DNA of 64,000 bases from Takakia lepidozioides (lineage: Eukaryota; Plantae; Bryophyta), in the NCBI GenBank assembly GCA_030704615.1, contig CM060732.1, forward strand, positions 13,268,001 to 13,332,000, written 5' to 3'. The notes below the pieces were generated by a model. That model was given only the letters and a program-made list of their open reading frames with translations, did no database searches and was not told the DNA's origin. The translations under genes and the position numbers were made by a program. This document shows, piece after piece, positions 4,962 to 57,151 of this stretch. Every line of letters begins with the position of its first letter. Position 1 is the stretch's first letter.

Positions 4962-7900
4962 TCAGGAATCCCTAAGGAGGAGTTTGTGCAGCTCGTTCAC
5001 GCTCAACGTCGGTGCATGAATAAAGTCATCAATAGTCACGTTCATCCTCAACCTCTTCAGGTAAATGTAATACAGATGCTTGCACGGATAATACTTCGAA
5101 CCCTTCTTTGCTTCCATCAACGAGAAGTCCGTACAATTGCAAGTCAGCTCCACTTCAATCGTAATTGTGTATACATCGTCGCGTACAGCCGAGCCGGCCG
5201 TTGCCATCCGATACACACGCCCCAGGCCGGGTGGGGGTACGTCCACGGAGCTCTGAATAGTGCAAGCCATCCCAAGAGGATTGGCAATCCGAGTCTCATT
5301 CAACTTGTTGGGAGGGTGTCGTCTCTTCACTCTTCCGAATCGCATTGTGGGATGTGCAGAATTGTCCAATCCATCTCTACTGGACCGAGCAGTCTGCAAT
5401 GGCTGGGTCTGAGGAACCGGAAATGCATGGGCCGGGATGTCTGTGCGTTGCACCATTCAAAATCCTGCTGCAGATAGAGCATCCGCCTCATTCTGAGAGA
5501 GGCTGCAACCCGGTGCAACAGGCCAGACGCCCGGAGGCTCCGGCATTCCCTGAATCCCGTACTTGGGCTTGCCAAATACACAGGTCATTATGTCGTGCCT
5601 ACAGAACCAAATGTCTACGTTGTGGCGTGAGCAAATGTGAGAGTCAAAAATCTGCCGCTGAAACAAGGTGCAGGTACAGCACCGTGTGGGTTCCTCCGAA
5701 TCATCTCACCACAGCGTGCTCTCGTATCCACCCGGATGGCGCAGCACTTCCCTCGAAATGCCGGCAATGTCCTCGCAATTCTCCACTGTGACTCCGACAC
5801 TCTTGTCTCCACAATGGGAATGTTGTACTGCTTTACTACAGATGGCTCGTTATGTTGCCGGGGCACGCACCCTGTGCTCAAAGGAGATGGCGATCTTGAA
5901 CGTGCAGGACTTGCGGTGCTCGACGAGACCTCCTCGGGCAACATCACCAGACCACGAGGGAGCGTGCGAATATTCTTGTCAGCTCGCCATGAATCCTATT
6001 CTCCGCCAGGTGCCTCGTCAAGTCTTCGTCTCACTGGACGGGTATGAACATCTCCTTCCAAATGTTGGCCTCTTCGCAGCAAAGGCGTGTCCCGAAGGCC
6101 CTCTCGCAAGGCCGCCGCCCACTTCCGAGGATTCTTCGATCTAGAGGCAGTCCGCATCAGCATTTCCTACCTGTTCGGCCCTAAGCCCCACTGTTTCCCT
6201 TTCAAGAACTTGTTGTACCTGCATTGCTGCATAATTGACCTCACAATATCCTCCGTTGTGGCAGTGAGGATGTCCACCAGATGCGCCGCAGAGGAGGCAC
6301 GCCAGGAAGAGTGCACTGATTCGGCCATGTTTGTCGTGGGCATGTCGGTGTCGGAGTCGAGACATATTTCCTGCACAAGCACATGTTGAGGTTACAAGCA
6401 AGTTACAAATATGGCCAAGAATAATATTCAACGGGACGCGAATTCGTGCAACTCACCTCCCGCATATAGTCGCCGAACTGGAGGAAACGATAATGCCACC
6501 ATGCTAGCCAACTGACCATTGCTCCCTCGTCTGATTTCCTTACAGCACCTGATGATGTCCACCAAGCCCGTATACATGCAAACTGTGTCTCTGCATCATC
6601 CAAGGTGGGAGCGCGCTTCCACGCAAGGCACATGGAACGGTGCTCCTCTCTGAAATCTGGCGCCACGAGCCTGGTTGTGTACTGCGAAAGGCTCTGCAGA
6701 AAATGGAACCCACAAGATCTCTCCTTGCCTTCCATGGGAACATTGGGGTCTTGCCCGTACACCCTTCGGATGGCAGCCCAATTTGCTTGTGCGTTGTCCG
6801 CCATGAAACCACGGAAATTGGGAGGGGGCAATCCCGCCTTGGCCATCTGTTTGTTTATTCCCTGCCAAAGAAGCATCTCTGATTGTGTGTCCTCTTCTTT
6901 CATCTCACAAATAGCAATTGTCATTAGCATCCTGCAGTGGGTGTCGTAGACATGTGCACCCATTGTCACCCACTGGTGATTTGTAATTCGCTTGATATGG
7001 TCGAACATGACCCAACTGTTTGACAAGTCCCCACTCGTCATCCTGTCAACCAGTTCGACGCCGCTGCCAGGTCCACACGTGGACATTTTGAATACGAAAC
7101 AACGATCTGCCTCAGTCCCTTGTCCTGGAAACCTACTTCCATGAATGTAGTCATATCCACATCGTCGCTTCACCTCCAGAATGGAGTGCATATCCGAGCC
7201 ACGCCCAATTTTCTGTTTGCATGAGACAATGTGGTTTTGGACATTCGATGAACATACGTGGGACACCGACTCCAGCAATGCCTCCATTTCCTTCTCATCG
7301 AGAGGAACTCTATTGGAGCCATCTTCCGACATAATTCTGGCCAATGCCATCTTATGGGCGGCTTGGAGCTGTATCTGTTTGGGTTTGGCACCCGGTCTCA
7401 ACTTAACCTCCTCCTGAACGAGCTGCTCTGCCTCGTGGGCAGCCTCCCACGAGTTCCCCCTCGCCAATTTGTGACAATGGGAACCAACGTGTATGCAAGC
7501 TCGGGTGAGGTCAGGGAAACGGTGCAACACATAGAACTGCTTGGCATTACAAACAGACATGCAGTGTGGTGGTTCTTTGCAATGCGCACACTTAAATGTG
7601 GAGTTCGGAACCTTCTCCTGAGCTCAAAATGGTTGATGAGCTGTGCCTGTCCAATCGGTCTCGTTCCTGTGACCTCTGGATTTCAAGTGGAAGCAAGTTG
7701 GGGAGAAACACCGCAACGCGCCCGCACAAACAATGTAGCGCACCCGCACACCATCGAGCATCTTCATGCTGGTGGTTTTGGTAACGCACCAAGGATGACC
7801 GTCATGTTTTCTATCCATATCTGTCAACATTCCGGACGCCCTCGAGTAGTCCGCCCGAGGAGGGAACTCAAAGAAGATATTACCGTCGACGTCGGCGGGA

Positions 7901-13857: not shown

Positions 13858-15806
13858 GAGCTCCTGTGAATGAGGGGCCAGTGGTGGCAACTCACATGGT
13901 TAGGCCATGTGTTGTACTAGAAGTAAGTACAATGATAGTAACCAGAAGCAAAGCCAAAATAATACCTCCAATAGATGAGGAAGGTGATGATAATGAAGAT
14001 GGCAGTGATGTGCCTGAAGATGATGAGGCTTGGAGAGATGAGAAGGAACTGCACAAGGAAGTGGCAGATACCATAAGGGAAATGCAGAAGAGTACTGATA
14101 TTCCTATGGCAGATTCCTCTAATTTTGAAAGAGAAGAGGAAGTGAGTGAGGATGAAGGGAAGAAAGAAGCTGCAGAAATGCAGAGTAATGAAGGGACTTT
14201 GGCTGAAGTAATATGCTAGTCCAAAGCGGAGATTACCATTGGACAGCTATTGGCTGTGGCACCTTATTGTAGACACAGGCTGTATCAAGCAATCAATCGA
14301 ATTGCCCATGTGACAGGGAACACAGACCTGAACAGCAAGGTGACCAGTTATAATGTGAAGCCGGAAGGGCGAGAAACAGTCATGGACTTTGATGATTCTA
14401 TGCCAGTAATCCAATTGAGAATTGGAAGCACAGAACTAACTGATGTACTGATAGATGGAGGCTCTGGAGTGAATATCATGACAGACCAATTAAGGCAGAA
14501 GCTTGGTCTAAGTAACATGAAACCAGCCCCATTTACAGTAACAATGGCAGATCAAAGAAGTGTTCAGCCATTGGGATTGATAAGAGGAGTTAAGATACAG
14601 ATTCAAAAGATGATCTTTAAGATCACAGTAACTGTGTTGAAAATGGATGAAGTCATGGAAGCTTACTCATTATTGCTGGGTCGACCGTGGCTGAAACAGG
14701 CCAGGGTATTCCATGACTGGAATTCCCAGTTACTAACTATGCATGATGGGATGCACAAGATACAAATCACCACTAAGAAATCTAGTAGACCACCTGCTAC
14801 GAGAAGACCTCGAGGGGTCAGGGAGTATGACTGGAGGGGAGGACTTGATGAGGAGCAGGAAGCTACCCTGTTCGCTGCACACCCAAAGTGGGAGCAGGTT
14901 GCAGAGATGCAACTGGAAGGCCTAAGTTGTTTAAAAGGTATCTGTTGTGGTGTAGTGACAGCAACACCAATTGAGGGTGAAACAAGCAGTTACCCACCAC
15001 ATTTCTATGAAGAAAGAGAGGGAGAAATGGTAATACTAGAGGAACCAGCCACTGTGAGTTTACAGGATGAAGTGGTGTCTGGTTGGACAATCACAGCTGA
15101 TGAGCAGGTGAGAGAAGTGAATGTGGGAACTGAAGAGGAACCGAGGATGGTGAAGGTAGGGGCTGATTTGGAGCCAGAATTCTTTGAGGAAGCTAAGAGT
15201 CTGTTCATCAAATACAGAGATGTATTTGCTTGGAGCTACGAGGATCTGAAAGGGATACCACCTGAGATCTGTCAGCATAAGATTGAACTGGAACCAGGGT
15301 CAGTACCAATCAAACAGGCAAGGTACAGAATGAATCCCAACTATGCACAGAAGGTTGGAGAAGAGATCAAGAAGTTGGCTGAGGCTAAGTTTATATACCC
15401 GATAGAGTATACAACTTGGTTGTCACCCATTGTGATAGTTCCCAAGAAAAATGGTAAACTGAGAGTTTGTGTGAACTATAAGAAGTTGAATGCTTGTACG
15501 AAGAAAGATCCTTTCCCTTTGCCATTCACAGAAGCAGTATTGGACACTGTGGCAGGCCATGAGATATACTCATTCATGGATGGCTTCAGTGGTTATAATC
15601 AAGTGCAAGTGGCAAAAGAAGACCAGGGAAAGACAGCTTTCATCACAGACTGGGGTGCTTATGCATACAAAGTTTGTAATGCACCAGCAACCTTTCAAAG
15701 AGTGATAAGTGAATCTTTTCATGAGTATCTGGATGATTTCATGCAGGTGTTCTTGGATGATTTCAGTGTGTACAGCTCTAAGAATGAGCACTTGCATAAG
15801 TTGTAG
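13854..15806 (+). pseudogene. pol: Gypsy element C protease and reverse transcriptase (truncated after the YxDD-equivalent motif)
   Basis: Protease VLIDGGSGVN and LLLGRPWL; RT SPIVIVPKKNGKLRVCVNYKKLN, MDGFSGYNQV, NAPATFQR, VFLDDF. Confidence 0.92.
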
Positions 15807-25784: not shown

Positions 25785-26002
25785 GGTTGGTAGCTCAGCT
25801 GGTAAGTGCACAGTGTGTCGCCCTGGTGGTTTGAAGTTCAAACCAGCTGCCCTGCCCCGTGTGTGGAATTGTCCGTGACTGTATGTTTGGGCGTTGATCA
25901 TCGTGAAGGGCCCATAAATGAAAGGGGTTAATTTTCCCCCCTCCTCAAAGGCCTGAATTGTGGGCTGTCACTCCCAGGTTTCCTTTTAAAAAATAAAATA
26001 AA
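25785..26002 (+). mobile_element. tRNA-derived SINE
   Basis: A box TAGCTCAGCTGG (25791-25802), B box GTTCAAACC (25836-25844), non-tRNA body and A-rich tail; no TSD identified. Confidence 0.7.
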
Positions 26003-26589
26003 TTCATGTAATAATAGTAATAATAATGCCACTCAAAAAATGCGTTGTTATTTATCATATGGTCCACTAGTCAGGGTACAAGGCACTCAGTTTAAACCCA
26101 GATAGGTGTATGTTGGATATCACCCCTTATGGCCAACCTACCTATAAGATTATACCTTGGGATTTAATTTGAGTCTTTAGGATGAGGGCTACGCAACCAG
26201 GGTCATTAGATTGTATCTATCTTTCAGAATTCAAACAGTAGACAATAGTCATTTAGGATGAAGTAATCACCATAGGTTACATAAGTCACACACCCTCTCT
26301 ATTGTGATGTAACAAGGCGTGAGATACACGGAGGCCCTGCCATTGTTTTATTGATATGAAGTTTTATGGAATGATGTTAGGGCTAACAAGGCGTGACATA
26401 CACTTAAGCCCGGTTGTTGACTAATTTGGTATTTAATAGCAGTGCATATGCCGTGCATATATCAGTCTTTCACCTATATACCAATACAACACTGGTCTCT
26501 ATTTTTAAAAGCAAAAAAATAAAAATCGTTAAAATAAAAATAAAATACTAAAATAATGATATGTACTATTTATTATAGCATATTACATA

Positions 26590-27063
26590 TCAATATATGA
26601 AGCGAGATGTTTGTTTTGTTTTGTTTGTTTTGTAGATTTGAGATGTCCCCAACCGCGAGGCCCCAACCCCTGGTGCTTTGTACCATTGGAAAGCCCTCGA
26701 CGAGGAGGGGTGCACGGGCTTAGTCTCATGCTTTTTGGACATGCCGTGTGGGAGATGTGGAATTTCAAGTACTTTGGGTCGCTGGAAATTGCCAAAAATA
26801 GCAAAGTGGGAATTCTTGGGACAATGGTTGGAGCCTCGAGAGGAGAGATATCAAGGGAAAGGTCTCCGGTTCAAATCTGGTCATAGGCTCTGTGGAAAAG
26901 AAAATGCATTTGGACTTAGATGACATTGGACCCTTGCGCCAATGACAAAGGCTACCCTAGAGGTCGCACTTGGGCCTTGACATAGGAGACTTGCATACAG
27001 AGGAGATTGCACTTGGGCTTAGATGACACTTGACACTTGGGCAAACGACACGGGCTACCCTAG
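26590..27063 (+). mobile_element. Non-autonomous Helitron, copy 1
   Basis: A|TC start followed by (GTTT)-rich sequence; 3' imperfect hairpin then CTAG|T; an earlier internal hairpin+CTAG near 26930-26960. Confidence 0.72.
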
Positions 27064-27102
27064 TATGTCTTCATATTATATTATGTTCCCATTCATTACT
27101 TA

Positions 27103-27480
27103 CTAGGGTAGCTTGTGCCATTGGCCCAAGTGTCAAGTGTTATCTAAGCCCAAGTGCAATCTTTTATGTATGCAAGTGCGTCTTCTATGTCGAGGCCCAA
27201 GTGCGACCTCTAGGGTAGCCTATGCCGTTGGCCCAAGGGTCCAATGTCATTTAAGTCCAAATGCATTTTTTTTCCACATAGCCTACGACCAGATTTGAAC
27301 CGGAGACCTTTCCCTTCATATCTCTCCCGTCGAGGCTCCAACCATTGTCCCAGGAATGCCCACTTTGCAATTTTTCGTGAATTTTCAGCGACCTTAAGTA
27401 CTTGAAATTCCACATCTCCCACACCGCAGGTCCAAAAATCGTGAGACCAAGCCCGTGCACCCCTCCTCGTCGAGGGCTTT
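27103..27480 (-). mobile_element. Non-autonomous Helitron, copy 2 (5'-truncated, inverted)
   Basis: Reverse complement of about 26690-27063; ends in hairpin CTTGGGCCAATGGCACAAG then CTAG|T on the minus strand. Confidence 0.72.
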
Positions 27481-27646
27481 GGAGAGGCGACATAGTGCGG
27501 TGGGGCCAACCTTCTCATCAGGAGCAGGGCGACAGCCGAATTTGCTACCTGGTTGCGACAGGGTGTGCGGGGATTAGAACGAAGCCAACGTGTACATAGT
27601 CCGGCGATTAGAGGGATTCCGGTACTAAACCCATTGGGTGCTCATC

Positions 27647-28396
27647 ATGGCGACAAAGGGTGGTACATGTTCTGTAAAAATGGATGCAGGTCCTGTAAAA
27701 ATGGAGTCCATGAAGACATTGGCTAGGGATAAAGCCATTGCAAACAGACGCTTAGGGAAGAAATTGCTTGAAGTAAGCGTCACTATAGTGGTAGCAGGAG
27801 TAGACATCGATCCAGGTTGTCTCTCGAAAATGGAGTGTTTTCTACGAACAAAATGCGTCTCATGTGTTTGTTTGTTGGAGAGAGGAGGGACTCTGTTTCA
27901 TGCCCACCTACAAATGGTGTGTAAAGTTTACGTATCCAGTTTAATCATGCTCAACAAACGAATAAAAAACGCTTTAGGTTGGAACAATCCAAAATCTGCA
28001 CTAGCCGGACCACATGTCCATTGCAAACTATTATGAGGTAAAGGCCTACAAACAAACATTGGCATGATCGGGTACTGCCTGAAAGACATCGACGAACCCG
28101 ATTTCCACTTCGTCTACGTGAGTGTCAGCGATGACGAAATGCAAGATGGAATGGACGAGGATACAAAGTTTGGTGCCTGCTTCGGAAAAGCAAAGGTTTG
28201 CCTCTCACACCAAAATGTTTTGGAACGAGCACGGATGTGGTGCAAATACAAGATGAGAGGGCAATTGAATGCAACACTGCCTCGTGTTCTCTTCCACATG
28301 ATGAAGTCTAGTCAGTATTTTCTTTCTGCCAATTGGGTTGTACCAGAATTAATACGTACTGCAGCTCAAATTAGGCATTTTAATCCATACAATTGA
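27647..28396 (+). pseudogene. Y1 HUH endonuclease (Rep) transposase, Replitron-like, copy 1
   Basis: Motif I-like VSVTI; motif II ERGGTLFHAHLQ (HUH+Q); motif III GMIGYCLKD (single Tyr, YxxK); then LSHQNVLERA; no helicase motifs; one in-frame stop at 28034-28036. Confidence 0.8.
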
Positions 28397-29374
28397 AGGG
28401 GGATTGCTAAACCGAGAGCGAAAAATTCCGTGAGCAGAATTCTGCTCACACTTCTGCATGTGCTCACCTATAACCGCGGACACCTATTCGGCCTAGAAGA
28501 CCTATTACTGCGGGTTGTGTCTAGTATATCATGCATACTTCATTCATCGTTATGGATGAATGATGGATGAATGATGGATAAACGATGGATGAATGGGGGA
28601 TGAATGTACGTTCGACGAATGGCACATGGATGAATGTAGTTTGTGGATGAATGCAAAACTAAGATGCATTTTTGAGTAATGGTTGCTAAATCAACCTAGC
28701 TCTAGAGTGAACCTCTGCCCACTGGTGAGGGTTGTGATTGTCCTTTCACCAGGTATCAGAAGTCGACATAGTTGCTGACACACAATTGCAAAGAAGGTGG
28801 AGAGGCCATTTGGTGCTTCAAACTAAATAGTTTAAAAATTGCAGATTCATTCCGACGAAGAATATTCTATGCTACTGGAGTCGGCGTCCAAAGTGAAGGC
28901 AGAACTGTCTATGAAGACACTAGCCCTGCTTTGCACAAAACCCTTTGAGAGGAGACTAAATTCCGAAGCTGCAGCCTCCGCATAACATGACAATTTAAAA
29001 TCTGCTTTCGGACTTGGGAAAAATTGCGGGTTTGCAAAGAAAGGGAGGAACCGTGGCGACCTTGGGCTCCTGTACACACACACAAACAATGTAAGTCCAC
29101 ATACATTCTGCTGGCCCAACTTGTGCAAGAAAGATGGAAATAGAAGGATGCGCCGTCGTGTCAGTGAAGTGCCACAACTGAACTAGCACTTACTCACATG
29201 AGAAATCAGAATCAACATCCAGAGCATTGGGCTTTTGCAGATCCTGCTCCATAACAATGTTCTTAGTCTGGGTCGAATGCGATGAACCCCCAGACAGAGG
29301 TGCGATGATTTGAGAGTAGAACTGCTTGTCCTACTCCATCCCAAAAGATCCCAAAATGGCTGCAATTCACTCTT

Positions 29375-30518
29375 AGGATTAAGGTGTCGTCAACGACATC
29401 TTAATCCAGGCACTACGAGGCAGGACTCCATAACTGATGTTGGCAACTTTCAAAAAAATCTGACCATGTAAGATCCTCATTCATGGCAAACTCATCCCAA
29501 GAGGGCATGGATTTAAGGTATCGCCAACGACACCTTAATTCCATCTCTCAAATAGCAATCAAACAAGAGAATGACACAACACAGAACAACACAAGACTAC
29601 ATTGAAATTGAAAGCAGAGGTGCAGAGTTGAGGCCACCAAGGTTGAGAGAAATGCTCACACCCAAATCTAAAGAAGGCAGAGAGGTGAACTCGTGCTTTA
29701 TAAATAAACATTTCAAAACACGTACTAGGAATTAAGATGTCGTTGACGACAATTTAATCCCCAGCACCTGCACACACACTGCCTTACCGCCAAGGCTTGT
29801 TCGCCATCAGATTTTTTCGGGTGAATTTTTTTGGGGTTTTTGATTTTTCCATGAATTGTCATATGGAAAAAAAAAAAAAAAAAACTTGCTGGGAATTAAG
29901 ATGTCGTTGACGACACCTTAATCCCCACCACCTGACACCGCCTTACCGCCAAGGCTTCTTCGCCTTGAAAGTTTTTTGGGTTGAAATTTTTTTGGTTAAT
30001 GTTTTTGGGAAAAACAATTCAGGGATTTTGGTTTTTCCGTAAGCTGTCATGTGCCAATTCGTACTGGGAATTAAGATGTCGTTGACAACACCTTAATCCC
30101 AAGCACCTGCACACGCACCATGGTTCATTCATGTCGCTCATTTTTCATCCAAAGTCATTCAACATTCATCCATTCATTTTTCATTCATCTCAAAACCATT
30201 CATCCGACAGCTTTTCATCGCACATTCGTACCATATGGTCGTCACCCATGAAGGATTCTTCCGTCGGATGGGGTGGAGATTCTGCCCGTACAGTGTAGTT
30301 TTTGTCCATGACAATAGGCCATCTTCTTCCCTCGGTTGTAGGCTCCCATTCGCTAATATGCTCACGCTTAAGGGATTCTGCTCACGTTTACCACTTAAAG
30401 CGTGAGCGTGCTCACGTGAACTGCTCACACGGTAGCTACTCTCTTGCAAATGAGACCGGTCACTCTTCATGGATCCACTTTGTTCTAGTAAACCCAAACC
30501 TTTCTCCATTTTTGGGCT

Positions 30519-30549
<31 letters not shown>

Positions 30550-30762
30550 TTTTATCCTGTTTGGTGAAATTCCCATGTCCAAACAGGGCAGGGGATTAAG
30601 ATGTCGTTGACGACATCTTAATTCGTGCTTCCCTGAGCAGGATTACAACTCCCCCCTATGGTTTTTTCCAGGCAAGATTTTTTTTCTTGCAACGATTTTC
30701 ATGGGTTCATTTCTCATTCTGAGCATGCGATTTAAAATGTCGTTGACGACATCTTAATGCCT
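29375..30762. repeat. Seven dispersed ~30-bp palindromes ATTAAGATGTCGTTGACGACATCTTAAT
   Basis: Copies near 29377, 29509, 29728, 29892, 30067, 30592 and 30728. Confidence 0.88.
30519..30546. repeat. (TA)n microsatellite
   Basis: Direct observation. Confidence 0.95.
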
Positions 30763-33700
30763 GGTCCCTGCGTTTTCTGATCCCTCACGAGACATGCTCA
30801 TACAGTCGTCCATAGTCCCCTCATCTGGACAACTTTTCATCCGTGCTTCATCCAACGTTCATCCATTTCATTTTTACGTCCATCCCAAATCCATTCATCC
30901 GTGAATGTTTCATCGTGCATTCGTGCCACTTTGTCGTCATGGAGTCTGTCTGTCTTCGGTCCGATGGAGCGGAGATTGCGTCGTTGTAGTGAAGTTGGCG
31001 TCCACGGCAATAGGTCCACTTGTTACGATCTACCTCAGTCCCTTGTCCTGGAAACCTACTTCCAGGAATGTAGTCATATCCACATCGTCGCTTCTCCGCA
31101 TCAAAAAATCTGCTCACGCTTTGAATTTACTCACGCTTCGGGGAATCTGCTCACGCATCCAGGAATCTGCTCACGGCTTTGCTGCCCTCCAATTGAAGGG
31201 AAAGTCTGTTTCCTACTCTTCATCTGTACGTTTTATCCAATACCGGAAGATGTACTTTAGATGACTCTTTCTCTTATGGTAGAGAGCCTTTCTCTCAGGG
31301 ATTATAGGAATAAGAATGTCAGTCAAGTTTAGATAATCATTTTCATCTTGAGCAGCACCCTAAATTTAAATCCTTTAGAACCCTCCATCTCTTTTCTAGT
31401 TGTCCAAAAACATTCTTAACTTTACTTTGTCATTTCAGGAAATTGTTTTCTGCCAAATAGCATAGTAATATATGGTGCATCATGACCATCATATCATCCG
31501 TGATGTGAATGACATTGAAAGGATATGGACCATGTCATAGCATGGAACATCTCTACATGCATTGTCCATGTATACATACAGCAGCATCATGTATCCATGT
31601 AGTATGCATGTCACGCATGTGGGCCATGCGTGGGCGCAGGCCCGCCGTGACGGGAGTATTGCTACAGCCAAACATGCACTGGCCACCGTTCCGGCACCTG
31701 AGGAAGAAACAAGAAACCAACGGTGAAAAATAATCAGGTTTTTTATAGAAAATAATTAGGTTTTAAATGCACAGAAATGAAGAAAGTGTGCCGTCCACCA
31801 ACACAATTGCATACTTACTTTTCTCATGTGCGAAAGTGCAAAAGGGAACGCCCAACACAGGCCCGGCGACGGATCGCCTTGCCCCGTAGCCATGGCCCGA
31901 ACCTGGAAGGCCCGGCCCGAACCTTCCATTGCGAATCACAGTCTAGTACTTTATTCTTACAGTTCCTTTAGGAGGGTCCCCCTCTGACCAATGACCCTCT
32001 TTTGCTTGTAACTTAGTTAAATGAAAAAACCCGGCCAAAGGAGTTCTCATCCATCGAAACCGAACAGATTTCATGCAATAAAACAGAAACATCATACTCT
32101 ACCAACTCACCCTTGCAAATTCCATGGATGGATCATAACAGTGAAAGTTTTTGCTGCCCATCCTTGCCTCGCTCTCCAGCCGCCCCCCCCAACTGCCCGA
32201 AAAACAAAGAAACCAAAAGCCACGCTTTTGGTTTGTTTCCCGTGAAGGAAGGACGGGGGGCGGTAAGGCGCGCTCAAGGATGGCCACGCCATCTTGCTCA
32301 TGTCTGCAGCGGCGTAAGAGATGGTCTGCGACTGCGGGGAGACGTAGCTGAGCAGGTAGAGACTAGAGACTCTGTTTCCAAGGAGAATTTCATGGATTTT
32401 TGAAAAAGTTGAAGCATGTAGAGATGTGTGCAGAAGAAATTGTTGACTTGCGCAGAAGGTTTTATGTGCGTGTGTGAGGTCCCCTCGCGGGCTCCGATTA
32501 TGGTAGAGGGGCACGAGTTTTGCTGACGGGCGGTTGGAGTGCTGCTGCATGTCCACATTCGGGTCAGCGCGTTTAATGTGTCTGCGTTGTAAGGCGGATG
32601 GTTGTCTGGGACATACATGTTGGACCGGGTGGCAAAGGTACTTTGTTGGATGCGCTTGGACTTGGTTCGTTTTCAAGAAGGATTCCTCGTTTAGGCTGGA
32701 ATTCTGGTTTGTGTTGGCGAGGAAAAGTAAGTTGAGAGATTAGCGATGAAGCATCAAGTTGGACGCAGTAGTTCGCAGTTCAAGACTCTGCCATAGGCTT
32801 CTGGATAATTTTAAGCACAGGAATTGAAGCCTTCCCTTCGTGGAACAAATGTGTTCGACCAACTTTCAGAGATGGCCCCGGAGTTGCACTTCTTGCGTTT
32901 TATCAATGTTTTATCGCACCTGAAGACATGGAGGGATTGAAATTTAGAAGCGATCAGCAAATTGGAATGGATGGATAGTCTTAAGTTTGATGCAAACCAC
33001 CTTTGGGAAATATCAGAGTCGGCACCCGAGTGCATTCGCATATTTTCTTGTCGCTAGACACTCTGAAAGTCTTTGGTATCGCTGCCTTGGACAAAAGCTT
33101 ACAGAAATCTGAAAAACATGTACAGACCAATTTACCTGTCCACCTTTAAACTACATTTAGCAGACTGGGAGTGAAATGGACAAAAGAGTTTTCGTGTTCT
33201 GGGTTGGCAGGGGACTAATTATTTTTCCTCTTTGAGCGCAGAGTACCGGTAGATGGCACTGTATGCTCTGTATGCTTGGACAAGCAATTTCTGGCTGAGG
33301 AAGTAGCAAGGCACCAAATAAACAAGAAGTAGGTGGAGGCAGATCTTTGTCTTTTGTCTTTTGTCGAGTCGAAGGGAAAACCTTCCTCGAAGAAGAGAAC
33401 ACTCCGTTCTTTTGCGGTAAAGTCTTGGGCGCTGATTTTCCTGCTTTTCAGAAACATGGGATTTGTTTTCCAATTTTCCTTACTTCTGCTAACAAGGAGG
33501 GATATAGCAAGACACTGATTCCGGAGAGGTTTTTTCTGTCTCAGTTCTTCTGCAATTATGTCATCGTCCAATTGCAACACATTACCCATGTCTTACTCAA
33601 GTTTTCTTCCTGATTAAAAAAGAGACATTAACGTTCGGTTATCTCTCTGAAAGCGATGAACATTAACTAGGCAGGATTGTGGTTGGTTGTGTATCTAGTT

Positions 33701-39300: not shown

Positions 39301-42300
39301 GAAAGTTGACATCCTCGAACTTGAAATTGCGTGTCTCATACTCCTTTCCTGCCATTTGTAAAAGGAATTGACAAGAATTGATGACAACATAGCTAGGTCA
39401 CGATTCCTTTGAATTAGTTGACTTTCGGACACCTTACTGGCTGCAGTTGCTTTATGCAAAAGAACAAAAACATGTGGATCTGGGGAATAATTAGGGATTC
39501 TCCACTTACCAATGCAATTTATTACAATGTTGGAACCTGCAATAGTTGTTTTGATGGACTCCTCATCCCTTACATTGTACCTGATGGGCACAATCTGACC
39601 TTACATCACAAGAAGAACAAAGACAGTGAGAAGGCCAGACACAGCAGTCTCGTACCTGCACAAGAGAGATATACTCCTATATATTCCCTGCAAGTTGGCC
39701 ACAGATGTGAACTCTTTATATCTACAAAGGAGCAGAGAAATTGATTATGCCAACAAGAGGCCAGAGAGAAAGTCATAAAGATAAAATAAAACTTTACAGA
39801 ACCTCAAAGCAAAAAAGAGAGAGAGACAGAGAGAGGGTAGTGGGTTTATGTGTCTGTGTATACTGCATGTATAGAGAGAAGTAAATTGCTTCCAAAAAAA
39901 TGAGGTGTGCACCACACTAGACAAAGTGGGGCATGATACAAAAAGGGGAAAATAGGGGAAAATAGGAAAAAGAGGATAGAACCTGTCCCAAGTCACCCAT
40001 TAGCTTGAGATGCCTCCATTCCTCATCCACCCCTCTGAAGGGTACAATGACCTGGGACCCCATCCTTGCTGCAACGTACAACAACCATATCAGCAACTGC
40101 TGATTCCCTATTCTTACTTCTCAAAATGCAAAAGGGTACTCACCTCTCTTTCTCATCCTGACCCTGTGAAGGAGAGTAGCAGCTGAAATTTTGACAAAAT
40201 GGTAGAACTTTCCAATTGAAATGTCTTCTTACTCAACCTCACAGATGTTTGGGTAGATGAGGGATATCCTAGGCTTTGATACTTGAAAGAGATTGTCTTT
40301 AAGTGAATTTGAAGCACCAAGAGAAAGGACGCGATTTTACCAAGCTGCTGAACAACGTAACGCCCTAGGAAGCCAGTAGCTCCAAATACGGTTGCGACCA
40401 CCCCACTATACACAATCCATACACAGTTCCCACCTTCTCTTGAAATAAGCTCAAGTCCAGAAAGATTACACACCAACTAGTTTAGAATTTGCTTGGTTTT
40501 CATGATTAATCTTTATTCATTTACAATAGAGAGAAACCAGTCATCACCAGACATATCCTCACCTGTCCCATCCAGAAAGTGTGAGATATGCATGCTGAGA
40601 TGAAGATACAATAACATACACAATTGAACCCTAAACTTGCGGGCTGGATCAATTGAAGGCTGATTGGCAGCCACACAAAAAGGACAGATAAAACAGGAGG
40701 GAACATTTCGCGAACAAATCAGATGAGAGATGATGTACTCTTAAAACATTGCTGCCTGTAGGCCTGTTCTCATAGACTCAGTGGACAGAGCACAAAGCAG
40801 GGGAAGGGGACAGGAGGAAAGCAGAAACAGGGCTACTACTGTTGCAGAAGGCTCCCTCCTGTATTGGCAAATGCCATAGCCTTGTTGCTGTAGACCCTGG
40901 GCCTAGTTTGGACGGACCAGGGATGCCCAAGGAAAGAGAGAAAAAACTCGGTCGCCACCCTTAAGGAAGGCTCACTCCACCAGTGAAACTTATCTTACAG
41001 AAATAAAGGTGATTTCAGCCTTGCAGGCTTTCTCGAGAAAGATAGGATAGCATTAACGAGATATGAGTATTCAACCCAAGGTTTAGATCCATGGCCAACC
41101 ACAGCTCTTCTCAAACTGAGCAAACAGAGGTGCAGTAACAGTCTGACTGATGATTTCCAAGAGGGCCTCTGGATCAGAAGAATACCCTTTACAATGAAGC
41201 AGAAAGTGTCAATTATCTCACACCCTCTGCCACAAGGTTTTCCCGGCTGGAAGTACTGTGGGCAGGAAGGCCTATTCTCAGTCACCAGTGTGAGGAAGTC
41301 CTTTCAATTGTTGGTGAGTCATAATTGAACAACGAGATTACAAAGAGAGAGAGAGGGAGATGTACTCATAAGACTTCGTTTGCCGTAGCCTTTCTGGCCA
41401 TAGACCCGCACCCAGTTTGGCCGAACAAAAGGGACCAGAAACTACCTTTGGGAGGGGCTCACCCGGGTAGTATGACTGACCTTGATACAAAAATATATAT
41501 ATATGATGTCAGCTGGAGCTAGCATAAATAAGAGCCTCCACCCCTTGCGGTACTGCCCCTTTCAGGGGTGGGCTCTATCAAAACCGGAACCACCTCAGAT
41601 ACAAACAATTAGTTTGGGCTTTCCAGATATCCTCTAGGAAGCCCTTCACACAAGCATCCATCTGCTGTGTGTGAGCAGCCCAAACTGTGAGGGAGTACCC
41701 ATTGGGTTGACAGGGATAATCATCCAGAGAGAACACATTCCAAAGACGCAAAAATAGGAATTGTTTTAAAGGGGGGAATAGAGAATGTACTCATAAGAAG
41801 TTGTTTTGCCATAAACCCCACACCTGGTTTGTGGGAAACAAAAGGGAACAGACACTACCGTGGGCCCCACCATGATATAAACCATTGGTTTCCTCGAGGA
41901 AGCCCCTCACACAAGCATCTATCTGTAGTGTGTGATTTTGCCCAACAGGGGAAGAGATTGTACTCATAAGACGTTGTTTGCCGTAGCCTTGTGGCCATTG
42001 ACCCCGCGCCCAGTGTCGAGCGGGAACAAAAGGGACATAACCTACCTCTGTCAGGGGCTGACGTTGGTAGTAAGACTTACCTTCATATATAGAATTAATC
42101 CGGGTTTTCCAGATATCCTCTGGAAATCCCTTCACACAAGCATCAATCTGCTGTGTGTGATTTGCCCAAAAACTAGGCCTCAGGAGGGCCTGGGCTTTTG
42201 GCTCAGCCTCGAGACTTTCAAAGTTGGTAAACAGGGGTACAGGCACAATTCCCTTGATAGATTTGAAGAGAGCGTCTCTTTGGTGAGAGAACCCCGGACA

Positions 42301-45300
42301 GTGTATCAGAAAATGAATACTGTCTTCAGATTGCCCACACAACGGGCAATTGCACTCTCCCTTTCCTCTCTGCTTCTGTTTGCTGTTCAAAGGTAGGCTT
42401 CCTGCCCTGAGTTTAAATTTCAGTCTAGTGCCGAGAGTGGGTAGACCCTTGAGGTCATCCAAGATGTCCTCCCCCATGTCACAGACTGGAAACAAGTTCA
42501 GGGAAGTTTTCTGCCTAACTTCATTTTCATCAGACAATCTCATGGCAACAGACATGGCTGAGGACACTACAGCCTCTAAGTCAGATTTATCCAGCAGGGT
42601 CAAGACTTGCGGATCCAGGTCCAGGTCCTTGAGGATCTCTTCTACTCTCTTCTGCCAGGACTTAGCCTGTTTGACAGGGCGGTCCTGTTTCCAAGATATA
42701 GAGTCGATTAACTTAGGATATCTGGTGTTGGGCATATGTTGCAGCTGACCCCACCATCTGACCTTGAATTCATCTCGTCGGGAGCTTAAGGACGGAATGC
42801 CAAACTCACCCCGAACAGCCACATTGGCTGTTTTGGAGCATGCTGACATACACTCCTTAAGCACCCCCACTTGAATGGATTCTAGAGACTTAGCCTGGTT
42901 GGAGTTATCAACCCATATAGCAGATCCGTACTCCAAGGCAGGTCTAATAACGCGACAAAGCATGGTTTTCTTAACCTCAGAGGTGACCCCTCTGCAGTGG
43001 AAAAATTTAGTGAGCCCCAGAGCTTTGCCCTTGCCAGTTTGAACAACTTTCCGGATATGTGCATCCCAATTACAATTGGAGGAGAACTCCCAGGTAAGTG
43101 TAGGAAGGGAGGACCGGGATCTCTTGGCTACCCCACTGCCACTTAAGATCACTTCCTCCCTCTCCTCTGTCGTTGAATGCTACCACTGCACATTTGCTGA
43201 CATTAGCCTCTAGCCCCCAAAGATCAAAGTATCTCTTCGCGCAATCAATCAATTCCTGGAGATTGGTTGGAGTCTCCCCTATGCCTGCGAAGTCATCCGC
43301 AAACATAAGGGCTGGTATGGTGGTATCACCCACCCTTAACCCAAATCCCTCACTTTCCACATCCTCGAGGAGTTAATTGATGAAAACATTGAAGAGTAGA
43401 GGGGAGAGAGTACATCCTTGAGCTACACCTTGGTCTATGTCAAAGAAGTTGGACTTCTGTCCATTAACAGTGACACAGCTTTTGGTGTGAGCATACAAGT
43501 TGTGGACAACTCTCCACATCTTTCCCTTGATCCCACAAGACCAGAGGCGGAACCATAGGCCATCTCTCCACAGTGTCATAAGCCTTTTTGACATCCAGGA
43601 AAAAGACATAAGTGGGTTTCCCTTCTTTTTTCCTTCCCTGGATAATCTGGCTTAGAGTGAAGATATGATCCACACAGCCCCTGTTTCGCCGAAAGCCAGC
43701 TTGGCCTTCGTGGAAACAACCTCTAGACTCCAGATCAACCTCGAGACGAGTACTTATAACTCTGCAGAATGTCTTGCCAACAGCATTGAGGAGCGTGATG
43801 CCACGGTAGTTCCCCGGTTCTTCTCTGTCACCCTTCTTGTATAGATTGACAATGACCCCCTGTCGCCAGCGAAAGGGGATCATTTCAGTCTTCCAGATAA
43901 GGTTAAAGAGGAGAACTAGGGCCTCTATCATGGGATCGCCACCGTGTTTGATAAGCTCGTTGACAATACCATCAGGTCCACCAGCTTTATATCCATTTAA
44001 ATGTTCAATTGCATCCACAATCTCAGAAGAACTAATGGGAGCATTATAAGCCATTGAAATATACTCCAGTTCATCAGGGCTGTTTTGAATCATAGGAACA
44101 ACATTGCCAATATATTCAGGTAGTGAGGTGTCTTGTCATTTGTATCTTACTCTTAGAGGATGGCACTAATATTCCCATATCATGTCCATGTGTAGGCTAA
44201 GACAAGTGGTCGTCCTCCACTTCTATTCTAACTGTGTCCCTCCATTCAGCAGAAGACCCCTCACTGTTAGACCTAGAAGTTCTGCCAAGGATACTGTAGT
44301 GAGTTTCAAAGGTTTTGACAATGTCAACCGATGAAGTCACCACTGCACCTTTAGTAGTCTTCAGCGCTTGTACTTGCTGACCGTTTTTCGGCTTGTACAA
44401 ACGTTGAAGGGCCAACCAGAATTTCTTGTCATTACCACCATGGTGGTTTGAGTTCATTTCACTGTATAACTTGTCCCAGTATAATTTCTTCTGAGACCTA
44501 ACAAGCTGATTGATATCTTTACGGAGCTGGTAGTACCTCACCCACAATTCTCTGTTGGTTTCCAAATTGCAGCACTCTTTATAGAGGGCTCGTCTCTCAG
44601 CTATCTTGAGTTTAATCTCATTAGTCCACCAATTAACTGCTCTACCGCAGACAATTAGTTTCCTCCCAATGATCTTGTCAGCCACGGAGGAAACGAAACT
44701 CTCCCAAGAGTCCACTGCCCTTTCGACTTCATTTCTTGCGTTAACAGAGCGTGACTGAAGTTCTTGGAGCGATCGGACAAAATGAGGGAGAGCCTCTTGC
44801 AAGGCCTGGACGTACTCAGCCTTGACCTCCTCATTGTGGAATTTTTCTATGCGCCACTTCCGAATCGAACGTTTCACAGATCTCTTGGTGGTGGGAAAAC
44901 ACCTTTTGATCTCAGTCCAAACCAGGAAGTGGTCAGAGGTACCAATATCAGTTCTGTCGATCAACACATTGGCACACTGGGGGAACAAAATTTTGTCCAT
45001 TATGATATAGTCCACAATGGAACGTTCCCCAGTTTGGGATTTCTCACGAGTCCACTGCACTTGGTCACCTCTTGTCCTGTTATTCAAGGTCAAAAGCTGA
45101 AGCTCTTCTAGACAGTTAATTAACCGTCTGCCATTAGAATTCAGCTCGTCCTCACCAAAAGGTCCAATGGTATCGTCCTGATGGATCCCTTTGCCCACCC
45201 GGGCATTGAAGTCCCCCAATAGTACCACCTGACCTTTGGCAAGGAACGAAGCACAGTCCAGCTTTACATCTTCGAAGGCCTTGTCTGCGTCAGCACTAAG

Positions 45301-45828
45301 GGTCCCCTCTGTGGGCATGTAAACACAACCAACAAAGAGGTCCTTTGTACTCATGCCGCCCTTCAAATTCAGTTTTAGCCAGATACTATGCTCGTACCTC
45401 AAACCCTTGTTGATAATTTCACAATTGTCAAACAAGAAATCACGGACAAAGAATCCGACCCCTTTTTGACCGCGTTTGGCAGAGGCTGCCTTGAGAGTAC
45501 ACATCTTACCTGCCCATTTATAACCAATGACATCTTCAACCAGTTTATCCGACGTTTCCCATGTTTCTTGCCCAGCACAGATATGAATATCATTAGTCCG
45601 AAGAACTTGTCCCACTTCAAGTTGTTTCCTTTGGTTGGTCAACCCTGAGAAGTTGAAAGTGGCCAGCCGCAAGCCAGCCCTTTGCGTGTGAATTGTTTGT
45701 CGTCTAGGTAGCTTGTGATTGCTCCTGGACGGCCAACCGTTCTGCAAAGGGGGGACAGTTACCCCATGTGTAGATTTTGCTCATCTTGTGTAAACTTTGA
45801 GAATTGGTAAACCATTCAGGAGAACAGG

Positions 45829-48323: not shown

Positions 48324-48357
<34 letters not shown>

Positions 48358-49467
48358 GCAAATCACACACAGCAGATTGATGCTTGTGTGAAGGGATTTC
48401 TAGAGGATATCTGGAAAACCCGGATTAATTCTTTATATGGAGGTAAGTCTTACTACCAACGTCAGCCCCTGACAGAGGTAGGTTCTGTCCCTTTTGTTCC
48501 CGCTCAAACTGGGCGCGGGGTCAATGGCCACAAGGCTACGGCAAACAATGTCTTATGAGTACAATCTCTCTCTCTCTCTCTCAGATTACGACAGAGGCAT
48601 GAAGGTTTGCAATACTGTACCAATGCCTGCGATCTACATGGTTACCTCCAGCTGTGCAGGCTGCCATGTGGCTTTCTGCTCAACACCACCTCACAGCCAG
48701 GATAATTTGATCATTCTAGATGTTAAGGGCAACGTGAGTTCCAGGTCATATGGTAACCTTAGTCTTAGGAACTGCCATGAAGAGGTGGTATTTTTAGACT
48801 GCAGCGTGTGTCATGTGCCTTGCTAACTAGCTTCCACACTCTTTGCTAGGGGTTTAGGGTTGGGACTTGTGGATTGTGATTCTCGTGGAATTATTCACCT
48901 GTGTTAGACATGGAAAAGCGTAGAATATTTGAGGCATGACTTCAGCTCTCATTTTACACCTTGTAGCTGCCCTAATGAGAGCAGTATCAATATTCTGGCA
49001 GTTTTCCTGCTGTGTCAACGGGTAGGTGCTACAGTGGCCAGTGTAGCATGAACATGTCCTCACCAAGGTACTGTGGATATTGCCAAGGATCAAGACACAT
49101 TATACAATTGTCAATGGTAAATTTCGGGCTCAATTGATTCTCAATGTATCACGAATTCTATTTTGATCTTAACCTTGGATTTACTGTGGGTGCCTATGTA
49201 GATGGACCCCATATGGCACGACAAAGTGTGTGATATGCAAACAACAGCTGCACCAGGAGGCAAAATATTGCCAGTCTTGTGCCTACAAGAAAGGTATGCC
49301 TTTCTGGTGATAAGACAAAAAAAAGTTCATTTCGGACGATGAGAAGTGGAAGTACTTGATCTTAATCCAATATCTGCTGACACTTCGGTGGTTGGCTTAC
49401 AGGTGTGTGTGCCATGTGTGGAAAACAAGTTTTGGACACAAGTTCGTACAAGCAAAGCAATGTATAA
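47277..49467 (+). CDS. CRIPT: Cysteine-rich PDZ-binding protein (CRIPT), 4 exons
   Basis: MVCEKC|QKKLSKVIVPDKWKEGASNTTEGGGRKLNENKLLSKKHR|WTPYGTTKCVICKQQLHQEAKYCQSCAYKK|GVCAMCGKQVLDTSSYKQSNV*. Confidence 0.95.
48356..48566 (+). mobile_element. ~210-bp 3'-end copy of the LINE between two (CT)n tracts in CRIPT intron 2
   Basis: Near-identical to the reverse complement of about 41958-42167; (AC)n(TC)n before and (TC)n after. Confidence 0.9.
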
Positions 49468-50664: not shown

Positions 50665-51849
50665 TCATGATGTATATGGTACAGATTGAGGGGAGAGCTG
50701 AAGTCTTTGAAGTTGCTCTCTGAGCACTTGGAAAGCTAGCGAGTCATTGGCACTGCTGCGTGGCCTGCACCACTCTTCTTTCAGCATAACATCAACATCT
50801 GCGCGCAAACTGAGGACTTGAAAGTTCCTGCGTAGAGCGGGGGCATGCGTTGTGAGGGCATCCTGAATGTATGGTTTTCCCACAGTGCGCGTAGCAGCAG
50901 CATTGAGCAGTTGATCTAAGGATCCATGTTTCTTCATCAGCTTCAAGGCTGTCTTCCGCCCAAACCCTGGTGCGAGCTCCGGCAGGCCTGGAATGCTGTC
51001 GGAGGCATCCCCCAGCAGGCACCGCATACCAAGCTCCAAACTAGGGGAGTATTCATGTTGTGCTACATAATGCTGGAGTGTGTAGAAAGACCACCGCCCA
51101 AATTCGGGAAGAGGGAGCAGCATGTGGATCTGAGGAGAGAGAAGTTGGCGCAAGTCCATGTCTGGTGAGGCCACAACCACTCTAAGGTCACGAGCGAGTG
51201 CCTGCTGCGCCAGTGTGGCGACGACATCGTCAGCCTCTGCCGTGTCCACCGTCACCACGGGGACATGACAGAGAGCAAGGAATCCATGGATCAAGGGCAG
51301 ACACTCGCGCAAGTCCGCTTCGGGACTTCTGTGGGTATGAGCCCTCACAGGCAGGGGTCGGTACTTGTTGCGACTGGCTTTGTAATTGGGCATCAATGCC
51401 TGTCTATACTCATTGCCTCTCTCCCCGTCCATCACTGCAATCACAGGGTCATGCTGCGTAACTTGAGTGAACAGCAACCGCATCCACTCCACCACTGCGC
51501 TCGGCCGCACCTTGTCACCTTCATAGCAGAGTGGGTGCATGTCAACCAAGTACAATCTTTTTCTTGGCCCTCTCTCATCATCCGTACTCGCATGCAGTCC
51601 TGTAGAAGGCTCTCCGCCCAGTCTTGGCCCTTCATTCCTCTTCTCGCAACGCCATACATCACTCCAAACTCCCCTGTTCTTTCTTAGCTCGCTAACATTT
51701 TCCACAACCCTGCCTACTTTGCCACTATCGATCTGTATGGCGCCACCGGCTGGAACTCGTGCGTTGACATCTGCTTGATTGCGGGTGCAGGGTCGCGGAA
51801 CATGGCGGGGAAACGTGAGGGGCCTAGATTGGAATGAGGAATGCAGCAT
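50665..51849 (-). CDS. Organellar 5'-3' exonuclease (Pol I N-terminal/FEN-like; OEX2-like), intronless, probable transit peptide
   Basis: LVDMHPLCYEG, DPVIAVMDGE, YKASR, EADDVVATL, ASPDMDLRQL, and H3TH GDASDSIPGL..GFGRKTALKL; likely start MLHSSFQSRP. Confidence 0.9.
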   Translation of the reverse strand: MLHSSFQSRPLTFPRHVPRPCTRNQADVNARVPAGGAIQIDSGKVGRVVENVSELRKNRGVWSDVWRCEKRNEGPRLGGEPSTGLHASTDDERGPRKRLYLVDMHPLCYEGDKVRPSAVVEWMRLLFTQVTQHDPVIAVMDGERGNEYRQALMPNYKASRNKYRPLPVRAHTHRSPEADLRECLPLIHGFLALCHVPVVTVDTAEADDVVATLAQQALARDLRVVVASPDMDLRQLLSPQIHMLLPLPEFGRWSFYTLQHYVAQHEYSPSLELGMRCLLGDASDSIPGLPELAPGFGRKTALKLMKKHGSLDQLLNAAATRTVGKPYIQDALTTHAPALRRNFQVLSLRADVDVMLKEEWCRPRSSANDSLAFQVLREQLQRLQLSPQSVPYTS

Positions 51850-52408
51850 TGGGCAAGCCTCCGTGTCAGTCAGTCTTCCACAAGAAACCCGAAACCCACT
51901 ATAGATCACAAGAACATTCTCTCCTTCATCTCACAAGCTTCAGATTTCTCAAGCTCCATCTACTTCCAAATCGTAGTTTACTCTTCCCCTTTGCGTCCCT
52001 CGCAGCTCTCGAGGCTTGAAGCTGCGCAGATTGCTGATTGCCATGGCTCAGCTCTCACGGCCATGCATAACCAGCTAGAAGGATGGATGACAGAACTGTT
52101 GCTGGATGAATCCAAGGTTGACCCACAGAGCTGGGAAGAACCCGCAGATTTCAAGCATAGAATTGATCAGAGAGATCAGAGAGAGCAGAGAGGGAAACTG
52201 GGCAAGTCGGGGAAATCAGAGTTGGAGCGACCCTCGTGGAGAGATTTGCGTGGGGTTGTGTAGGGACCACACATCTGTTTCCTTGGTAAGGGCTCAAGTG
52301 TGCCTCTAAAATGATGAGGCCGAATGTGTGTTTGTTGAGGGTAAGAGGGAGGGATCGAAGGAAGTAAAGGGAGGTTTGTGGAACACAAGATTGGTGGAGT
52401 TATTAGCT

Positions 52409-55400: not shown

Positions 55401-57151
55401 CTAAGCCTGTGGCAAAGCAATGTGCAACAGTACATCCTCTCGTAAGGACAGACACTTAGGGCTGCGAGTAAAGGAGTTTTCTGTACTGGCATGGTGAGTA
55501 TCCAGCTGGCTTCGTAATCGAGAGTTGCCTATTTCCTCGGTGGCTCATTAGTGCAACTGTGATCCAGGTAGGGGCAGCCGGAGGTCCACGGGGGTCTAAA
55601 CGGTTGAAGGCAAATACGAAGGATGGAAAACAGTGTTTGGAGCGCATGTACCTGTTCGAAGCTCTAGTGCAGAAGACCAATCAGATTCAGACTACTATGG
55701 ATGTTGATCTGTGTGTAGACATGTATAGGCAGAGCTTTGGGCATGGACTGGATAGTCTCTTGTCAAGGAATGTGGAGAATTTTCTGCGTGTTGATGTCAA
55801 GCAAAAACATGACGTTGACAGTGTTCTAGTGAGGACCTTGGATGTACAGAAAGAAATGAAGAAACCCTTGCTTTCCAAAGATCAGCAGACAGCAATGCCT
55901 ACACTGTTGCCTGATGAAGTAGACAGAGTTGCAACAGGACAACTGAACAAAAGTGAGGGGAAAGACCTTGAGCCAGAAATGGAGGGCAAGAGATTGACAA
56001 TTTCTGAGACTAAGGAACTGAGTGGGAAAGCTGATCGGGTTCCCTGCTTGAAGTCACAGGAAGAAGTGGTGATGAATCCTTTACTTTCCAAAGAACAGCT
56101 GGCAAGAATGGATGCACTACTGGTTGATGACAGAGAGAGGGTTGCAACAGGGCAGGTGAGTGAAAATGAGGAAATAACACATGGGGTAATAGACCTTGAT
56201 CCGGAAATTGAAGTCCAGAGTTTGAAAATGGGTGAGAAAGATGACGGAGTTCCCTCAGCTGACACCACCTTGGAGTCACAGGAAGAAGTGGAGAAGATTT
56301 CCTTGCTTCCCTTGATTTCCTTGCAGGCAATGATGGATACACCATTGACTGATGAGAGGGTCACAACAGGGCAGATGAATGGAAGTGAGGAAGTACTAAA
56401 ACACCTTGAGCAGGAAATTGAGGGCAAGAGATTGACAAGAGATGAGACTGAGGACCACAGTGGGAAAGGTGACTGTGCTCGCTCAGCTGAAAGCACCTTG
56501 GAGTCACAGGAAGAGGCGAAGAATGCCTTGCTTTTTACCGACCAGCGAGCAACAATAGACACCTCTTTGCCGGATGAGAGAGAGAGGGTTGCAACAGGGC
56601 AGGTGAATGATGAGGAACTAGTTCATGAGAGAAAAGACCTTAAGCCGGAAATTGAGATCAACAGAATGAGAAGAGATGAAAAGGAGGATCAGCAAGGTGA
56701 TCAGGCTGCCCCAGGTCATGAAAGCACCTTGGAACCACATGAAACAAAGGCGAAGTTGCTTTCCAAAAACCAGCAGGCCACGACGGACTCATCACTGGTT
56801 GATGAGAGAGAGAGGGTTGCAAGGCAGGTGACAGAAAGTGAGGTAGCACTTCAAGCTGAAGACCTTGAGTTGAAAAGTGAGGGCAAGAGATTGGCTGGAT
56901 ACGAGACTGAGAATCAGAAGGAGAAAGGTGTTTGGGTTCCCTCAGCGGCAGGAAGCAGTGGGTTGTCCATCACTGAAGCAATCATAACCATGGAAAGTAA
57001 GCAACAAGATGCAGGAAAGCGGCACTGGTCCCACTCGCTGGAAGGGTTTCTTATAGGTCGAGGTTGGTGGAAGGTAGACTGTGATGAAAACAATGCTCGG
57101 GTAGCATGTCAAAAGTTTTTGAATTCAAGTCAGGTATCATATGTGTTATGA
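52409..57151 (+). CDS. Plant protein with a SHI/STY-like RING-type zinc finger (At1g32730-like), about 6 exons, repeat-expanded C-terminus
   Basis: KCIVCGNQAQAR|CPFRACKTCCTMAKNDCTVH across exons; WRFQKLREH..EDEAFDRYMHNMSLLEEVFS block; GT-AG junctions. The family assignment is from recall only. Confidence 0.7.
55845..56950 (+). repeat. About 4-5 degenerate coding tandem repeats (about 65-80 aa each)
   Basis: Recurring LLSKxQ..D..L.DERERVATGQ..E...DLEPEIEGKRL..ET..SGK..SA..TLESQEE. Confidence 0.8.

Follow-up and report, generated by a model that had tools for sequence, protein, structure and literature searches.

A probable Replitron transposase pseudogene and its repeat-bearing 3' flank in a 64-kb stretch of transposon-rich DNA

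The locus and its reading frames

The window, by which we mean the whole 64-kb stretch of DNA that was analysed, is rich in transposons. An integrase is encoded at 2177-3292, a protease together with a reverse transcriptase at 14250-15806 and, on the minus strand, an endonuclease of LINE type at 44197-45747. A 216-nt inverted match (48355-48569 versus 41953-42168, 97% identity) adjoins LINE-like ORFs, and a 530-codon ORF at 55559-57151, internally repetitive over 55832-56946, is without a Pfam match. The only clear host-type gene noticed in the window encodes a 5'-3' exonuclease (50665-51909, minus strand), an intronless ORF of 414 codons with the Pfam domains 5_3_exonuc_N and 5_3_exonuc. Its best named matches come from Physcomitrium, Ceratodon, Marchantia, Riccia and Calypogeia at 60-65% identity, with seed plants at about 50%. 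A maximum-likelihood tree, which held no hornwort, placed the exonuclease as the earliest branch of the moss clade (97/89 support), apart from the liverworts. Judged from this one gene, the host is probably a non-seed plant of an early-diverging moss lineage. Replitrons, the transposon family to which the rest of this account is devoted, are reported in mosses, liverworts, lycophytes and ferns, and not in hornworts or seed plants (PMC10288648). A preliminary description of this DNA had brought forward their abundance in non-seed plants; the exonuclease groups with mosses, where Replitrons are known.

The gene under study (copy 1, plus strand) consists of two ORFs in the same frame, 27638-28036 and 28064-28396, with a single TGA at 28034-28036 between them. 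From its first ATG at 27647 to a TGA at 28394-28396 the frame has 250 codons, in accord with the preliminary description, which had spoken of two ORFs, one in-frame stop and a protein of about 250 residues. That description had, however, begun the gene at 27481. This position marks where a 791-bp palindrome ends, and in-frame stops occur upstream of the ATG at 27575 and 27626; we place the start at 27647.

A short N-terminal region of about 43 residues precedes motif I, SVTI (27776-27787). It is followed by ERGG (27878-27889), whose Glu is a putative metal ligand, by motif II, HLQ (27905-27913), which is of the HUQ form and lies within HAHLQ, and by motif III, GYCLK (28070-28084). The residue next after the Lys of motif III is Asp, leaving one Tyr, the Y1 rather than the YxxKY arrangement. 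The Rep motif order and the single catalytic Tyr of GYCLKD are thus as first described, and the four motifs occupy the same columns as in 71 relatives (see below). By sequence and by its match to the Pfam family PF21859, the first pseudogene piece (27647-28033) holds the N-terminal region, motif I, ERGG and motif II. The in-frame TGA (28034-28036), which falls between motifs II and III, is crossed by both tBLASTn and profile alignments. The second piece (28037-28393) holds motif III, what is left of the Rep domain after it, and an early portion of the Replitron_C domain, up to the residues WVVP. The second stop (28394-28396), together with the same-frame tail that runs from 28394 to 28570, is a possible decayed C-terminal remainder, one without statistical support.

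The earlier claim that no helicase motif follows the Rep domain is borne out: a Walker-A pattern was absent from all frames of 26000-32000, save one isolated match at 31184 that has no domain behind it and is a chance occurrence. The ORFs adjoining copy 1 are without any Pfam domain. An exact-product lookup of the 110-residue ORF of copy 1 showed that it is not on record.

Family assignment and decay

We searched the two pieces, 27647-28033 and 28037-28393, separately in every tool. A read-through sequence was used in scripts only, with X at each stop and, for the second copy described below, at each frameshift join as well; no spliced model was involved and no residue was put at any break. 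Against Pfam PF21859 (Replitron_HUH), piece 1 matched profile positions 2-68 (18.7 bits, E 2.4e-3) and piece 2 matched positions 90-126 (26.8 bits, E 7e-6). The two matches are collinear, and each is below the Pfam gathering score of 28.5 bits. No other Rep family appeared in the Pfam scan of both pieces at E<=10, and piece 2 was not matched by Replitron_C (PF21860). A word-index protein search with each piece returned nothing, a null subject to a limitation of length and word. An exhaustive search of about 15 billion sequences with piece 2 recovered 196 relatives at E<=1e-3 (28 at E<=1e-10), the best of them 45% identical. Their matches span residues 1-105 of the piece, past the HUH model and into the second domain. 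Named relatives include proteins of Riccia sorocarpa and R. fluitans, entered in UniProt as "Replitron HUH endonuclease domain-containing protein", and a protein of Adiantum nelumboides.

The relatives of at least 240 residues, 71 in number, were submitted to a Pfam domain scan together with the two window pieces, giving 73 rows. Replitron_HUH was present at E<=0.001 in 71 of the 73 rows (among the relatives, in 70 or 71 of 71) and Replitron_C in 42 of the scanned rows. A fused helicase or capsid, for which the relatives were to be checked, was found in none of the 71, nor did the scan return any further Pfam family in them. The alignment of the relative P0005 to the window by tBLASTn ran in a single frame across the stop, with 38% identity over 218 residues (E 1.6e-41). 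A profile built from the 71 relatives matched the read-through of copy 1 with 243 bits (E 3e-76) over profile positions 24-227, corresponding to 27722-28351 of the window, and the stop at 28034-28036 falls in a weakly conserved column of this profile. On these two scores the match of copy 1 to the family is far beyond chance. In a quick FastTree phylogeny, which is rough and whose supports were not inspected, copy 1 was nested among land-plant Replitron proteins and grouped with unnamed metagenome-derived proteins. The window had no nucleotide similarity to the contigs that encode the closest relatives (L001 and L002). Nine contigs encoding another relative, P0154, represent one single locus.

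A second, divergent copy (copy 2) lies at 62612-63402 on the minus strand and is the only other Replitron copy within the 64-kb window. It was located by tBLASTn with the copy 1 pieces, by the profile and by PF21859. The profile scored 86 bits in one frame and 104 bits in a second, with a 15-bit detour into the third, a path over three frames that implies at least three frameshifts; several stops are present as well. Its motifs are SCTV (63327-63316), HFQ (63195-63187) and GYWLK (63028-63014). It keeps the full Replitron_C region, and one of its pieces alone exceeds the PF21859 cutoff of 28.5 bits, with a score of 36.5. The two copies share 24-31% amino-acid identity, and a comparison of their flanks gave no similarity. 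In the same rough FastTree analysis, copy 2 fell in a neighbouring clade with the Adiantum protein. As its sequence reads, copy 2 is a different Replitron lineage and is more broken than copy 1.

The evidence argues strongly for the Replitron assignment that the preliminary description had proposed: PF21859 is the sole Rep family matched, the relatives number 196, the profile match is of 243 bits, and the Riccia proteins bear the family's name. We consider it very probable that 27647-28396 is a decayed Replitron transposase gene, which once probably reached about 28570. Copy 1 is a further member of a family that is already described. The expectation that standard annotation would miss the family is out of date, as PF21859, PF21860 and the UniProt names now cover it.

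On the reading frame, copy 1 is a pseudogene and not an intact transposase. The TGA at 28034 separates motif II from motif III, so that a product ending there would lack the catalytic Tyr. The profile homology ends past WVVP-EL, at about 28351 (WVVP itself being encoded at 28334-28345), and the family consensus runs about 45 conserved positions farther, with the pattern GRGM..RA..LW...FF. The tBLASTn alignments of P0008 and P0040 showed a 14-codon insertion after WVVP and then continued through the second TGA (28394). The same-frame tail carries RG, RA and LF in ungapped register with the consensus to about 28510. The profile of 71 relatives gave no score on this tail in any frame. The C-terminal third of the second domain thus looks degraded, by decay rather than by absence, and the tail hints at an ORF of copy 1 that formerly extended to about 28570. 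We considered and rejected a clean boundary of the element at CAATTG (28391): the pairwise alignments and the register suggest a longer frame, at a level that is not significant. An intron around the first stop was likewise rejected, since intact relatives align collinearly and without a gap across it. L003, the relative of the closest clade for which DNA is at hand, has three stops in the matching part of its gene and no intron there.

The pattern of decay bears on a first alternative: that a Replitron transposase was domesticated into a host gene, and that the stop reflects an error in sequencing or a lesion confined to one strain. Copy 1 has a single nonsense codon and no frameshift over about 210 conserved codons, and all its catalytic motifs are intact, as such a gene would have them. 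Against this stand the decayed end of the second domain, with its insertion and second stop, and a transposon-rich setting that includes pieces of an LTR-retrotransposon and a LINE as well as the dead copy 2. Nothing closer than 45% identity was found among the roughly 15 billion sequences, and there is thus no sign of a conserved orthologue. We regard a domesticated gene as very unlikely.

Predicted fold and competing explanations

The fold was predicted for the relative P0008, whose identity to the window frame is 37% across 235 aligned positions. AlphaFold2, run on P0008 with the family alignment, gave a core (residues 115-350) with pLDDT above 90. In the model the elements follow the expected order, strand 1 carrying motif I, strand 3 the His and Gln of motif II, and helix 3 the Tyr. 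The same placement of the motifs on strands and helix is described for Replitron-1 (PMC10288648). The structural check that had been proposed for the stop-repaired protein was thus made on P0008, whose model shows the HUH-type order of elements.

Foldseek comparison of the P0008 model with the PDB gave matches that were all weak (E 2e-3 to 4e-2, all above 1e-3) and had unrelated proteins mixed in. Those of high probability were the papillomavirus E1 DNA-binding domain, SIRV1 ORF119, the Muscovy duck circovirus Rep, a human smacovirus Rep, the JCV T-antigen origin-binding domain, pMV158 RepB and AAV5 Rep. The target-normalised TM-score was 0.5-0.6 for the small Rep domains and 0.33-0.36 for RepB and AAV5 Rep. 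The family sequence profile found nothing significant among the PDB chains. [quoted passage not shown]

The structural neighbours of the model, which include circovirus and smacovirus Rep domains, lend some colour to a second alternative. Copy 1 would then be a fragment of an endogenised Rep of a CRESS-DNA virus, geminivirus-like or circovirus-like, whose SF3 helicase was lost by truncation. HUQ and GYxxK are found in circovirus-type Reps too, and copy 1 is indeed truncated or decayed at its 3' end. The Pfam scan at E<=10, however, returned no viral Rep family, no Walker A follows the Rep domain of copy 1, and not one of the 71 long relatives has a helicase or capsid domain. Past the Rep domain, copy 1 matches the Replitron-specific second domain up to WVVP. 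Among 2.9 million viral contigs, scanned with one family peptide pattern, there were 0 relatives. A viral origin is on this evidence most unlikely. A third alternative would make copy 1 a piece of a Helitron (RepHel), or else of an IS200/IS605 or IS91 transposase of the prokaryotic type. It draws on the motif order common to all HUH enzymes and is almost certainly wrong, as copy 1 has one Tyr and not YxxKY, no Pif1-type helicase is near it, no Helitron or Y1_Tnp match was returned by Pfam, and the relatives found are all Replitron_HUH proteins.

Flanking repeats, proposed mechanism and known systems

The 791-bp palindrome upstream of copy 1 (26690-27480) has arms of about 390 nt that are 87% complementary and are joined by a short spacer. 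Internal sub-repeats and a stretch resembling a tRNA T-arm are seen within it; tRNA and Rfam searches of the window returned nothing. The palindrome could be a foldback, a SINE-like insertion or a part of the left side of the element. A Replitron would be expected to bear a short direct repeat at or close to each end and, as a rule, to lack a target-site duplication. Copy 1 is the one copy of its lineage in the window; its candidate ends, on the left at 27430-27660 and on the right at 29360-29730, had no words of 8 nt or longer in common.

The 3' flank of copy 1, from 28429 to 29542 on the plus strand, is possibly the right-hand part of the element and holds three repeat motifs. These are a 20-nt palindrome, GTGAGCAGAATTCTGCTCAC, at 28430-28449, a tandem array of ATGGATGAATG at 28552-28653, and two perfect hairpin palindromes of 34 nt at 29375-29408 and 29509-29542. 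The 34-nt palindrome (consensus GGGATTAAGATGTCGTCAACGACATCTTAATCCC) is present in seven copies between 29375 and 30761, of which the first two share an orientation and the remaining five are inverted, and was found nowhere else in the window, nor in the JGI metagenome contigs. As single-stranded DNA the hairpins are predicted to fold with -6 to -13 kcal/mol. The five inverted copies belong to a tandem pair of units, each about 700 bp long (30480-29690 and 31240-30560, minus strand), which are about 70% alike and repeat the three motif types of the copy 1 flank in an unchanged order: CTGCTCACG iterons, GGATGAATG repeats and the five hairpins. The iteron-like CTGCTCACG repeats are set at 20-nt spacing over 31097-31175, and a sub-array that repeats about every 165 bp occupies 29721-30118 inside the region of the units. 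The interval 28429-31175 contains 7 of the 7 hairpin matches of the 64-kb window, 6 of the 6 for CTGCTCACG and 8 of the 9 for ATGGATGAATG, the numbers expected by chance being 0, 0.33 and 2.1, respectively. No trace of Rep coding and no protein matches were found in the two units.

Strong homology between the flank of copy 1 and the inverted units was rejected, as the comparison beats shuffled sequences only through the motifs. A 73-nt segment at 31025-31097, inserted in one unit relative to the other, is 96% identical to 7102-7174 and is probably a small dispersed repeat. We also considered, and rejected, a conservation of hairpin or tandem arrays past the Rep gene in the loci of relatives, there being no shared hairpin system. 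At the locus of the relative P0004 (L002:6819-6956), a 15-nt tandem array resembling TTGCTGATGTGGAC is situated about 230 nt past the Replitron ORF, a position that recalls the ATGGATGAATG array after copy 1.

The inverted units may be non-autonomous or truncated relatives of the element, or an unrelated repeat. One could go further and propose that the hairpins, CTGCTCACG and GGATGAATG form a cis apparatus of the kind found at a Replitron right end or origin, and that the Rep-less units are non-autonomous or one-ended rolling-circle products. We hold this to be unlikely. Were it true, it would offer a first concrete picture of the DNA signals read by a land-plant Replitron transposase.

The mechanism of the Replitron transposase is taken here from the family (PMC10288648), and the catalysis, multimerisation and mobility ascribed to the ancestor of copy 1 are inferred from it; what the present data show directly is the identity of the sequence, its place in the family and its lesions. 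The ancestral protein would have been a Y1 Rep-class HUH endonuclease of a eukaryotic DNA transposon that spreads by copy-and-paste. Motif I (SVTI) would lie on strand beta-1, and the Glu together with the His and Gln of motif II (HLQ), on strand beta-3, would coordinate a divalent metal. The enzyme would recognise a specific terminal site of the element; in HUH systems such a site is often a hairpin. Helix alpha-3 would carry the one Tyr of GYCLK, which would nick single-stranded DNA and stay covalently joined to its 5' end. The helical domain that follows would multimerise the protein and so provide two Tyr residues for cleavage and strand transfer, the second one, from the other subunit, performing the transfer at the target and thus giving copy-and-paste spread. 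Having no helicase of its own, the enzyme would obtain single-stranded DNA from host replication or from a host helicase. Copy 1 as it now reads cannot make a working transposase, given the TGA between motifs II and III and the degraded end of the second domain. It could be mobile only with the enzyme supplied in trans, and only if the ends of its element are intact.

Replitrons were defined in 2023 and are little studied, and each new lineage helps to map the second group of eukaryotic HUH transposons. Two divergent dead lineages within 35 kb fit the long vertical persistence reported for Replitrons in non-seed plants. Copies 1 and 2 leave the knowledge of the family unchanged; the adjacent hairpin and iteron repeats might alter it, and only if they are a recognition signal.

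Among known systems, the IS200/IS605 transposase TnpA likewise has a single Tyr and no helicase, acts as a multimer and recognises subterminal DNA hairpins, but it is prokaryotic and much smaller, has another second domain and shows no sequence relationship to copy 1. Helitrons are, like Replitrons, eukaryotic HUH transposons and are presumed to spread by rolling-circle copy-and-paste; they have two catalytic Tyr residues and a fused Pif1-like helicase, neither of which is seen in copy 1. The CRESS-DNA Reps, such as those of porcine circovirus 2 and Muscovy duck circovirus (PDB 7kij), appear from the model to share the Y1 HUH fold, an HUQ-type motif II and YxxK, with target-normalised TM-scores of 0.56-0.60 against the P0008 model. 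Unlike them, copy 1 lacks an SF3 helicase and a capsid gene, and its sequence gave no significant match to theirs; they belong to small circular genomes, whereas copy 1 is chromosomal and transposon-like. Replitrons (Craig 2023, PMC10288648; PF21859/PF21860) are multicopy elements of about 2-4 kb with a second domain of about 90 residues that is putatively for oligomerisation, and their hosts are in the green lineage (non-seed plants and algae), the stramenopiles, the cryptophytes and the haptophytes. Copy 1 differs from the known members in the stop between motifs II and III, in the decayed end of its second domain, in its short N-terminal region and in its identity of at most 45% to recorded proteins. 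With the Replitrons of Riccia and Adiantum nelumboides, for example, it shares SUTU, the Glu, HUQ and GYxxK, a single Tyr without a helicase, a match beyond the Rep domain to the conserved second domain as far as WVVP, and a probable non-seed-plant host.
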